Virus record (IMG/VR): IMGVR_UViG_3300036770_004723 | Location: 186,001 to 250,000 of that record | DNA length: 64,000 nucleotides | Strand: one strand, 5' to 3' | Part shown: one piece after another, positions 10,596-12,534 of the stretch | How the letters are laid out: the number at the start of each line of letters is the position of its first letter | Numbering within the stretch: the first letter of the stretch is position 1 | Position numbers and translations under genes: made by a program | The notes under the pieces: model-generated | Told to the model about the DNA's origin: nothing | Databases searched by the model: none | The model's input: the letters and a program-made list of their open reading frames with translations, nothing else

Positions 10596-11684
10596 ATGAG
10601 TAATTTAGTCAAAGGTAAAACTTTCAGTCTGCGTAACGGCGCACCGGTGACAGATCTGAAATTCAAAGGCAGCAACATGACTGCTCTTTCAAGTAACGGT
10701 GAAGTGAACGCAAATGACAATCGCGATCTGATGCACAAAATCGGCCAGCTGTTACAGTCTGTATCATCTGGTGAAATTGTTCAACAAAATGTAGGTGCAT
10801 TTGCTTCTTTATCAAATTCAGATAAAGTAAATTTGATCGCTGTTGCAAATTCTGATAAAGATAAATGGGCTGCTTTAGGTGCATCTATCGCACAAGAAGT
10901 ACGTGAACAGCAAACTCGTCAAGGTTTTTTACGCAGCATGACTGTTGTTGAAAACATGAAACAAGGCGAAGTAATGCGAGTTCCTATGCCTAAGCATGGC
11001 GGACGCGCTATTGTTGCAACTGGCCCAACTGCATTGCAGTATCAGTTAATTAATGATCGTTACTTTACACCTAGCCCGTTTGAATTAAAAGCTTCGGTAC
11101 GTGTAAGTAAGTTAGAAATGGTGCAGGCAACGCACGATTTATTAGACCATGCTTACAATGAAGCTGTTGAAGGTATGGTAACTGCCGGTGATCGTATTTG
11201 GAAAAGCGCTGCTGATCGTACTGTTGGTAAATCAAACAATTTGGTTGGTTTTAGCGGTGCTTTAACTCCGGCAGTTATTTCTCGTGCTGCTTCACGAATT
11301 CGTGAATGGAATCTTCCTGTATCTCGTGCAGTTATTGCTGCAAGTTTTTGGGAAGATATCCAATCTGAAAGTTCATGGGCAACTGCACTGACTCCAGTGT
11401 CACAGTACGAATTACTGTTAACTGGTAAGATTGCAACTATCTTCGGTCTGGATCTGATGACTGATGGTTTCCGTCCTGAAAACCAACGTGTGTTGACACG
11501 TAACGATGCTTATATTGTTGCTGATTCTGAATATCACGCTACTATGGGTTCGTTTGGTGGTATTGAAAGTACTCCAACTGATGGCTCCAACAACGGTGAA
11601 ACTACCAAAGGTTGGTTACTGTCTGAAGTAATGTCTTTCGTTATTCCTAACACACGTTCAGTTATCAAACTGCAACGTATCTAA
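10596..11684 (+). CDS. Major capsid protein
   Basis: 362 aa; position after scaffold and decoration genes; HK97-like features (GKIATIFGLDLMTD, GWLLSE near C-terminus); SD GGAG; followed by a terminator. Confidence 0.8.
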   Translation: MSNLVKGKTFSLRNGAPVTDLKFKGSNMTALSSNGEVNANDNRDLMHKIGQLLQSVSSGEIVQQNVGAFASLSNSDKVNLIAVANSDKDKWAALGASIAQEVREQQTRQGFLRSMTVVENMKQGEVMRVPMPKHGGRAIVATGPTALQYQLINDRYFTPSPFELKASVRVSKLEMVQATHDLLDHAYNEAVEGMVTAGDRIWKSAADRTVGKSNNLVGFSGALTPAVISRAASRIREWNLPVSRAVIAASFWEDIQSESSWATALTPVSQYELLLTGKIATIFGLDLMTDGFRPENQRVLTRNDAYIVADSEYHATMGSFGGIESTPTDGSNNGETTKGWLLSEVMSFVIPNTRSVIKLQRI

Positions 11685-11797
11685 TGATTAAAATGTCGGC
11701 TTAAATTAAAAATCCTTATTACTCTCCCTTAATATCGCCGACTAAGTACTGAGCTAGAAAAACTCTCACTTTCTAATTAAACTCGGTAAATTAATCA
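11685..11797 (+). ncRNA. Structured 3'-UTR element (three-way junction with twin C-rich loops)
   Basis: TGATTAA/TTAATCA closing stem; GTCGGC/GCCGAC and TACTGAG/CTCGGTA arms; loops ACTCTCCCTT and ACTCTCACTT. Confidence 0.45.
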
Positions 11798-11798
11798 C

Positions 11799-11842
11799 AA
11801 GAACCCGTATCGAGATATTCTTGGTACGGGTTTTCTTGTTTA
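11799..11842 (+). terminator. Intrinsic terminator after the MCP
   Basis: AAGAACCCGTA...TACGGGTTTTCTTGTTT. Confidence 0.8.
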
Positions 11843-11853
11843 AGGATCTTATA

Positions 11854-12534
11854 ATGGAAATTCAAAACTATATACTTGCGGATGATGCAGACTACGATCA
11901 ATTTTCAGGTACTTTAGTAGGTATATCTGTAATAACTGCTAAATTAAAGCAGTTGTTTAAATTTAAACATATTCCATTAGTATTAAATGATAACTGGCAA
12001 GGTGCATTAACGAAAGCTTATGGTATTGCAGATAATATTGAAAAAAAATTGCCGGATCCTTATTGCTATCTAAAAGTAAGTTCTTTTGGTGTTCGTGACG
12101 ACGCACATAACTTAAACCAGTCTATGCGGAATGGTACTGGATTTAATACACGAGGATCTGATACTGGTGATTTAAGTAATGCCTTACTTGATATGCAGTA
12201 TTTTGCTTGGGCCAAAGTTAACATAGAGCTTTGTGTTGGTTTCAGAAATCCAATTGCTTTTTTTGCTTTCTGCGAAAAATTGAGTATTGCTATACGCGCA
12301 CGTAGATTAAGTGCGTCCGCAAATTTTGATGGAAACGTTTTTGATGTATATGCAGATCCACAGCAAAGCGAAATATCTCCAACTATGATGACAACCGATG
12401 ATGCAACTACTGCTGGTTGGTTAACGTTAAATCATGCCCTTACCGTACACACCCAATTCGGTACATCTATCGCAGTCGCTAAACTTAATAATGAAGGAAT
12501 TATAACTAACAATGTAGAGGTGATCCGTGAATAA
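11854..12534 (+). CDS. Putative neck/tail-completion protein
   Basis: Between MCP and sheath; start moved to ATG 11854 after AAGGA. Confidence 0.45.
   Translation: MEIQNYILADDADYDQFSGTLVGISVITAKLKQLFKFKHIPLVLNDNWQGALTKAYGIADNIEKKLPDPYCYLKVSSFGVRDDAHNLNQSMRNGTGFNTRGSDTGDLSNALLDMQYFAWAKVNIELCVGFRNPIAFFAFCEKLSIAIRARRLSASANFDGNVFDVYADPQQSEISPTMMTTDDATTAGWLTLNHALTVHTQFGTSIAVAKLNNEGIITNNVEVIRE

Follow-up and report, generated by a model that had tools for sequence, protein, structure and literature searches.

The locus and its setting

The DNA examined here, referred to below as the window, is a stretch of 64,000 nucleotides corresponding to positions 186001-250000 of IMG/VR record IMGVR_UViG_3300036770_004723, a 286,584-bp viral genome (34.6% G+C) from a subsurface metagenome that is rated complete by CheckV. 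The genome (G000 below) belongs to a jumbo phage of the Lu11/PaBG/NCTB/Erwinia-Dickeya group, which has been called the "Lupandier group" and whose members encode a sigma factor but no RNA polymerase of their own (PMC7412058). No near-identical DNA was found in named phages. The genes around the feature of interest all lie on the + strand and encode, in order, an ATPase, a virion structural protein, the major head (capsid) protein, a 226-aa protein, a 130-aa ORF product and the tail sheath. The capsid protein matches PHROG phrog_2522 (major head protein, E = 2.3e-75) and is 42-49% identical to the major head proteins of phage NCTB, Pseudomonas phage Lu11 and the Dickeya and Erwinia jumbo phages. 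The features at the locus, in window coordinates, are as follows.

10596-11684 (+): major capsid protein gene, whose transcript carries the element at its 3' end; stop codon TAA at 11682-11684
11685-11691 (+): 5' strand (UGAUUAA) of the closing helix P1
11695-11742 (+): predicted hairpin HP1, with stem GUCGGC (11695-11700)/GCCGAC (11737-11742), an inner AUUAA/UUAAU helix and a large loop presenting CUCUCC (11722-11727) within ACTCTCCCTT (11721-11730)
11747-11788 (+): predicted hairpin HP2, with outer stem UACUGAG (11747-11753)/CUCGGUA (11782-11788), inner stem UAGAAA (11755-11760)/UUUCUA (11770-11775) and loop AA-CUCUCAC (motif at 11763-11769) within ACTCTCACTT (11762-11771)
11791-11797 (+): 3' strand (UUAAUCA) of P1; UAAUCAC is a conserved string just before the terminator
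11800-11838 (+): predicted intrinsic terminator, with a 16-bp stem and 3-nt loop (11800-11834) followed by a U-run
11842-11846 (+): Shine-Dalgarno (SD) sequence AAGGA of the next gene
11854-12534 (+): next gene (226 aa, phrog_17324, unknown function), downstream of the terminator

Predicted fold of the capsid 3' untranslated region

A preliminary description of this sequence had proposed that the region directly after the capsid stop codon forms a three-way-junction RNA with two similar CU-rich loops followed by a terminator, and this observation is confirmed, since every named element is present, with the sole correction that the second arm begins at 11747, one base lower than had been implied. 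The minimum-free-energy (MFE) fold returned by RNAfold is exactly the proposed three-way junction, with -18.6 kcal/mol for 11685-11797 (z = -3.66, 2 of 200 shuffles folding as well) and -43.4 kcal/mol (z = -6.25) when the terminator is included. The decamer ACTCTCNCTT occurs only at the two loop positions in the 64-kb window, where 0.43 occurrences are expected, although 6 of 100 shuffled sequences gave two or more; the comparative data below make this more than chance. A terminator scan calls the terminator, which begins 116 nt after the capsid stop codon, and the same analysis found no promoter-like (sigma-70-like) site on the + strand inside 11685-11800. No Rfam 15 family, whether a riboswitch, ribozyme or known sRNA, reached its gathering threshold; the best hits were rli38, at 24.4 bits against a threshold of 49, and others with E of 0.5 or more, and there were no hits at E <= 0.1 in four of the related loci (L078, L017, L003 and L037).

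Conservation and covariation among related phages

Searches of IMG/VR, a JGI metagenome, and Logan and ENA assemblies yielded 12 distinct relatives with 56-84% capsid identity (L-numbers below denote individual relatives), whereas loose DNA patterns in IMG/VR returned mostly chance hits and no new relatives. In these phages a hairpin whose loop ends in CUCUCAC lies 25-45 nt upstream of a conserved terminator; the motif is invariant in 11 of 12 relatives, with the variant CUAUCAC (loop UCUAUCAC) in L025. The stems, by contrast, comprise 9 different and unrelated sequences, for example UAGAAA/UUUCUA, GUAAGAG/CUCUUGC, UUACGUA/UAUGUAA, GGUGA/UCACC and CUAGGA/UCUUAG. In an alignment of the seven loop-closing pairs, from which the variable 5' loop bases were removed by hand and which is therefore fitted to the structure, 87% of stem cells are paired as compared to 53% in shuffles (0 of 500 reach the observed value), and all seven pairs show changes on both sides. 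A covariance model of HP2 finds one strong copy per genome in G000 and in two related genomes, G001 and G002, so that HP2 is not a dispersed repeat; the other CTCTCAC "hairpins" in the genome are 5-bp chance stems in coding sequence.

The HP1 motif CUCUCC is kept in 11 related sequences with wholly different stems. In the seven relatives that, like the window, have only an intergenic region here, it lies near the 3' side of a hairpin loop, on stems that include GUCGGC, GUUUUUGU, UUGAAUG, GGUAAAAGAUUG and AAAUGCAAUCA, and 96% of stem cells are paired as compared to 45% in shuffles. A control showed, however, that a single 6-7-bp stem around a fixed motif is common when loops up to about 40 nt are allowed (P = 0.25-0.5), so that the support for HP1 rests on the set as a whole (Fisher P about 1e-4) and on the long stems in L025, L032, L024 and L076, while the window's own 6-bp stem is not significant by itself. 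The closing helix P1 is kept only in the window's own subclade (the window, L002, L024, L025 and L029), where GAUUA/UAAUC-type pairing is maintained with A-U to G.U changes but no clean compensatory change; it is absent in L032, L075 and the ORF-bearing relatives described below, and the three-way junction is plausible only for this subclade. The terminator is conserved in all relatives with covarying stem variants (GAACCCGUAUCGAG.. versus GAACCCAGAGCCGAGG..) and has four G.U pairs on the + strand.

Relatives at 56-63% capsid identity, and all more distant ones, carry a small ORF (75-157 aa) between the capsid gene and the 226-aa gene that the window's subclade has lost, no copy being found elsewhere in the genome by tblastn. 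In those relatives HP2 follows the stop codon of the ORF, and CUCUCC lies inside it, in frame 0, as the Leu-Ser codons CUC-UCC at one alignment column in 4 of 6 ORFs (L031, L035, L037 and L076) and as CUC-UCU in a fifth (L033). The hexamer is the only CTCTCC in each 3.5-kb locus. Nucleotide-level selection on this hexamer thus predates the loss of the ORF and outlasted it.

A complementary leader 60 kb upstream

CTCTCAC or GTGAGAG occurs only 7 times in the 286-kb genome. One copy, at genome position 138037 on the + strand, lies in the sequence UACUAUGAGAAUUGUGAGAGGUUCUCUGGAGAGUAAAUAAAC, 29 nt before an AUG, in the 5' leader of a gene (genome 138088-138759) for a 223-aa Lys/Ala/Pro-rich protein with KAPAG repeats and no Pfam or PHROG family. 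This gene lies 60 kb from the capsid gene, downstream of an SbcD-like nuclease gene, and is a separate unit with its own AT-rich upstream region, a conserved TA(G/A/C)TAAT -10-like motif and its own terminator. The shared motif TA[AGT]TAATTTT, considered as a promoter element, is not a genome-wide promoter family. GUGAGAG is the complement of the HP2 loop, and GGAGAGUAA, which lies immediately 3' of the GUGAGAG hairpin, is the complement of UUACUCUCC in the HP1 loop.

A protein-anchored search for the leader locus found only G001, G002 and a third related genome, G003, and both loci could be read in only three genomes of the window's clade: G000, G001 (capsid 66% identical) and G003 (capsid 56% identical). 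Their leaders read as follows.

G000: GAGAA-UUGUGAGAGG-UUCUC-U-GGAGAGUAA
G001: GAGGA-UUGUGAGAGA-UUCUC-GU-GGAGAGUAAUU
G003: AUGAAGU-UUGUGAGAGG-ACUUCAU-CU-GGAGAGGC

The target hairpin thus has a conserved loop and a covarying stem, and in each of the three genomes this leader is the only place where GTGAGAG and GGAGAG lie within 40 nt of each other on one strand, the expected count being 0.01-0.08 per genome. The base after GGAGAG is U, U and G in G000, G001 and G003, respectively, while the base before CUCUCC is A, G and C, which gives U-A, U.G and G-C pairs between the two molecules; in G001 the complementarity extends over 11 contiguous nucleotides (AAUUGCUCUCC with GGAGAGUAAUU). The predicted cognate HP1 duplexes (7-11 bp, -13.7 to -15.7 kcal/mol) are more stable than those that combine G003 with G000 or G001 (-10.6 to -12.0), but G000/G001 cross-pairings (-14.5) are as stable as cognate ones. 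The loops are predicted to be accessible, with opening energies of 0.1-1.1 kcal/mol (0.1 for the window's HP1 loop); the regulator loops cost 0.1-1.5 kcal/mol to open in G000 and G001, although the G003 HP1 site, which lies inside its small ORF, costs 6.7. Across the stems there are 8 G.U pairs against 2 A.C pairs on the transcribed strand, and both A.C cases are at end or bulge positions.

Scans based on energy alone did not single out this leader. In a windowed RNAduplex scan it ranked about fifth of 28,652 windows in G000 and was not at the top in G001 or G003, where the scan was swamped by GC-rich flanks, and unrestricted RNAduplex between the whole regions gave long, meaningless duplexes with z between -2 and +1.6; we regard both as uninformative and not as negative.

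A sister clade with different loops

The synteny of SbcD-like gene, long leader and basic-protein gene holds in more distant phages that form a sister clade, namely PaBG (identical to genome G005), Lu11, HRDY3 and two metagenomic phages, G004 and G006. In these, the hairpin right after the capsid stop codon has the loop AGCGCC(C) on varied stems, and the leader of the basic-protein gene (PaBG gp295) has a hairpin with the loop GGCGCU, a perfect complement, on the stems ACCUU/AAGGU, AUCGU/ACGAU or AUCGC/GCGAU. Two clades thus carry unrelated but internally complementary loop pairs at the same two loci. No second contact was found in the PaBG/Lu11 clade, its core is only 6 nt long, and in four of its leaders the hairpin is not favored thermodynamically. 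A search of G004-G006 for further complements of the hairpin GGAGAGCGCCC gave extra matches only in coding sequence, the partner being limited to the 6-nt loop. Inspection by eye revealed no convincing loop pair in Dickeya JA11, Erwinia Y3, NCTB or the related genome G007; NCTB, G007 and Y3 have plain hairpins after the capsid gene, and the twin loops GAGAAAUU of JA11 against its leader AAUUUCUU are AU-rich and unproven.

Interpretation

We are confident that the element is a new, conserved, structured RNA of capsid 3' untranslated regions. Our favored reading, which we consider probable but by no means certain, is that this RNA, either as the 3' untranslated region of the abundant late capsid mRNA or as a fragment cut from it, acts in trans as a two-site antisense regulator. 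In this view, the HP2 loop would kiss the 10-nt loop (UUGUGAGAGG) of a hairpin near the 5' end of the basic-protein mRNA, the HP1 loop would pair with the single-stranded GGAGAGUAA just 3' of that hairpin, and the pairing would couple expression of the basic protein to the level of capsid mRNA. The analysis itself establishes the fold, its conservation and covariation, its single-copy status, and the complementarity together with the conservation of that complementarity at orthologous loci; that the two RNAs meet and form a complex, and that their pairing is regulatory, are inferences from sequence alone, and the sign of any regulation, repression or activation, could not be deduced. A search of sequencing runs found this DNA only in its source metagenome and in a wastewater run with two 151-nt contigs, which lie inside the capsid gene and show nothing over the element; no RNA run was found to contain the phage. 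The kissing core is short (7 nt in the window's clade), and the target sites, 29-55 nt upstream of the start codon and ending 29-45 nt before the AUG, do not cover the ribosome binding site (RBS). Forcing the leader hairpin in constrained folds does not change the predicted RBS accessibility in any consistent way, and sequestration of the SD region by the 3' arm of the hairpin, though seen in the G000 and Lu11 MFE folds, is not general. PaBG gp295 is not among the virion bands in the 11 of 14 listed rows that could be read (PMC7412058).

[quoted passage not shown] The element is a real, conserved, structured RNA ending in an intrinsic terminator, the two CU-rich loops are its invariant and functional part, and base-pairing to purine-rich partners is the best explanation for them. 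However, the conserved partner found here is not an SD sequence of host or generic early mRNAs but a specific pair of sites upstream of one phage gene, and CUCUCAC is not anti-SD-like. UCUCC does match GGAGA, which lies in the SD region of 35 of 351 crude gene calls, including those of the capsid operon in relatives, but GGAGAG is there in only 2 and GUGAGAG in none; only in G003 is the target gene's own SD GGAGAG. C/U-rich loops that target SD sequences have precedents in RNAIII and the Rsa RNAs (PMC2837412), yet, judging from the phage's own genes, we consider a released sRNA acting as a general anti-SD repressor to be very unlikely.

Among the alternatives, the one with most in its favor, though still unlikely, is that the twin hairpins are binding sites for a phage or host protein, such as an antiterminator acting like lambda N at boxB or a factor controlling capsid mRNA stability or translation, and that the complementarity to the leader is coincidental or serves something else. 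A conserved loop on a freely varying stem is the classic signature of a protein-binding hairpin, the two loops share CUCUC at a similar distance from the 3' arm, and the element lies directly upstream of a terminator that separates the capsid gene from the tail genes. In the sister clade, moreover, the core GCGC is palindromic, so that a common protein reading N-GCGC-N hexaloops at both loci, or self-kissing, would also fit. One protein cannot, however, read both CUCUCAC and its complement GUGAGAG, and this view leaves unexplained the unique, conserved co-occurrence of both complements in one orthologous leader as well as the U-A/U.G/G-C covariation. Nor does the element resemble a lambda-type nut site: there is no boxA consensus (CGCUCUUA), GCUCUCC occurs in only two relatives, and the loops, of 8-36 nt, include no GNRA-like pentaloop.

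It is less likely still that the motifs act on DNA, as a protein-binding site, a cruciform or a single-strand hairpin signal (an operator or a hairpin promoter of the phage N4 type, for example). A single DNA site present in opposite orientation at the two loci would produce just this complementarity in both clades, and at the leader the motif lies about 10-30 nt after the -10-like element, an operator-like place. Against this, stems covary freely at five different hairpins, which a duplex-DNA site does not need, G.U pairs outnumber A.C pairs, the spacing of the two motifs is 7-10 nt at the leader but 34 to more than 200 nt at the capsid locus, HP1 is in a hairpin loop while its partner GGAGAG is not, and both loci lie inside transcribed untranslated regions bounded by a terminator or an SD. 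Ordinary 3'-end architecture, in which the hairpins only protect the very abundant capsid mRNA from 3' exonucleases or tune termination and read-through into the tail genes, and the loops are conserved for folding or processing reasons, would suit the position immediately upstream of a strong terminator, and plain hairpins do occur there in other relatives. We think this improbable as well, because a stability element does not need invariant 6-7-nt loops across phages whose stems and flanks have fully diverged, the matching partner elsewhere in the genome is not explained, and the terminator hairpin already gives 3' protection.

A broader possibility, which we put forward only tentatively, is that across a family of jumbo phages (the window's clade plus PaBG, Lu11 and HRDY3) the 3' end of the capsid mRNA is a dedicated trans-acting riboregulator of one other phage mRNA, that of a histone-like lysine-rich protein. 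Regulator and target would have co-evolved so far that the kissing loops were exchanged wholesale between clades (CUCUCAC:GUGAGAG against AGCGCC:GGCGCU), with one regulator hairpin outliving the small ORF in which it was embedded. This would be an mRNA-to-mRNA link, in timing or stoichiometry, between capsid production and a DNA-binding protein in lytic phages; we know of no such case, and literature searches found no report of this element or interaction. Post-transcriptional control inside lytic phages is barely charted, and almost nothing is known of it for jumbo phages of the Lu11/PaBG group. If the pairing is real, an abundant late structural mRNA would double as a regulator of another phage gene, a simple way to tie a DNA-binding protein to capsid output or to switch off an earlier function, and it would give a rare natural example in which both partners of a kissing complex can be followed through evolution, including a complete change of loop sequence, in phages of which PaBG (host P. 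aeruginosa PAO1) and Lu11 (host P. putida) are culturable. If it is not, the element is still a new, well-supported structured RNA family in capsid 3' untranslated regions.

Comparison with other RNA systems

In its proposed architecture the pairing resembles the OxyS-fhlA kissing complex of E. coli (Argaman and Altuvia 2000, as described in PMC2946933), in which a small structured RNA uses two separate stem-loops to pair with two short sites (7-9 nt) of one target mRNA, at least one of them presented in a hairpin loop, neither contact alone being long. Complementary sequences of at least 6-7 nt are predicted in hairpin loops of both partners in three genomes of the window's clade and in five phages of the sister clade, and the HP1 contact provides a second site in the former. 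OxyS is, however, an independently transcribed stress sRNA without sequence relation to the element, and one of its sites covers the RBS, whereas here the putative regulator is the 3' end of a capsid mRNA of a lytic jumbo phage and both target sites lie upstream of the RBS. Staphylococcus aureus RNAIII, acting on rot and coa mRNAs (PMC2837412), likewise has conserved C/U-rich hairpin loops repeated in one RNA, purine-rich target loops, and two loop-loop interactions with hairpins in the target 5' untranslated region that are needed together, but its loops carry UCCC and hit the SD, and its kissing complexes are cleaved by RNase III.

The Mu-gpT-DE RNA motif of Rfam, named in 10.1101/2020.02.04.933952, is also a conserved structure of unknown function downstream of a phage major head gene, in that case of Mu-like phages. 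It does not score on the window or its relatives even at E = 10, the phage group is different, and it has no known partner. Finally, the element shares the intrinsic terminator of the upstream coding gene, as do 3'UTR-derived bacterial sRNAs such as CpxQ, SroC and DapZ, or CisR acting on a CTX-phi mRNA (PMC13250501), whose levels follow those of the parent mRNA. Here the release of a separate short species would be inferred only, both parent and putative target are genes of one lytic phage, and in relatives part of the element (HP1) lies inside a coding ORF.

Sequence features flanking the capsid and basic-protein loci

In most of the phage group, the capsid gene is followed by a small acidic ORF (75-157 aa) for which we found no Pfam or PHROG family, and which has been lost in the window's subclade. 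In the sequences of the relatives (L numbers), it occupies the following positions, with no counterpart in window 11685-11853:
L031:2349-2663, small acidic ORF
L033:2349-2624, small acidic ORF
L035:2341-2580, small acidic ORF
L036:2318-2545, small acidic ORF
L037:2343-2645, small acidic ORF

A tblastn search detected no copy of this ORF elsewhere in the genome. The RNA motif CUCUCC that lay inside it survives. In two more distant relatives, L013 (2690-2907) and L014 (2700-3100), the small ORF is replaced by a GIY-YIG-type homing-endonuclease-like ORF (FYVYVLLDPRKPG.., YVGKGKG), which lies directly after the capsid gene.

In L075 (2340-2392), the motif of the first hairpin, HP1, is immediately followed by its own complement (CUCUCC-U-GGAGAG-UGUGA), and the loop motif can therefore be sequestered in a 5-bp local hairpin, which could be a built-in mimic of the target site or a decaying copy. 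A third conserved string, (A/G)GUCUC(G/A)UUUA, lies between the second hairpin, HP2, and the terminator in the relatives that lack the closing helix P1 (L032, L075, L033 and L037), and in L033 it sits in the loop of a CAGAUUA/UAAUCUG hairpin; no partner was identified for this string. In Dickeya phage JA11 (L258:1995-2070, after the capsid gene), two successive hairpins share the loop and stem string GAGAAAUUGUG, and the leader of the JA11 basic-protein gene contains AAUUUCUU. This may be a third version of the same pairing, but it is AU-rich and could be the result of chance. In the Pseudomonas phages Lu11 (L262:2600-2650) and HRDY3 (L263:2626-2675), the terminator after the small ORF has a conserved tip, UGUGAGAAAUCAC, which is unusually well kept for a terminator loop.

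Outside the window, the gene whose leader carries the predicted target sites (genome 138088-138759 of G000, the phage from which the window derives; L078:2588-3259) encodes a 223-aa Lys/Ala/Pro-rich protein with KAPAG repeats and no family match. It forms a monocistronic unit with an AT-rich (TTTTA)n upstream region and its own strong terminator (L078:3261-3296), and is syntenic after the SbcD-like gene throughout the Lu11/PaBG/NCTB/Erwinia group. In NCTB it is annotated as a "Low-complexity acidic protein", although it is basic. Elsewhere in the G000 genome, likewise outside the window, AAGGGAGAGU at 253884 (- strand) is a perfect 10-nt complement of the HP1 loop ACUCUCCCUU, a match seen in the G000 sequence and of a kind for which about 0.5 occurrences are expected by chance in the genome, while GGAGAGUAGUAUG at 283784 (- strand) places GGAGAGU at an SD.
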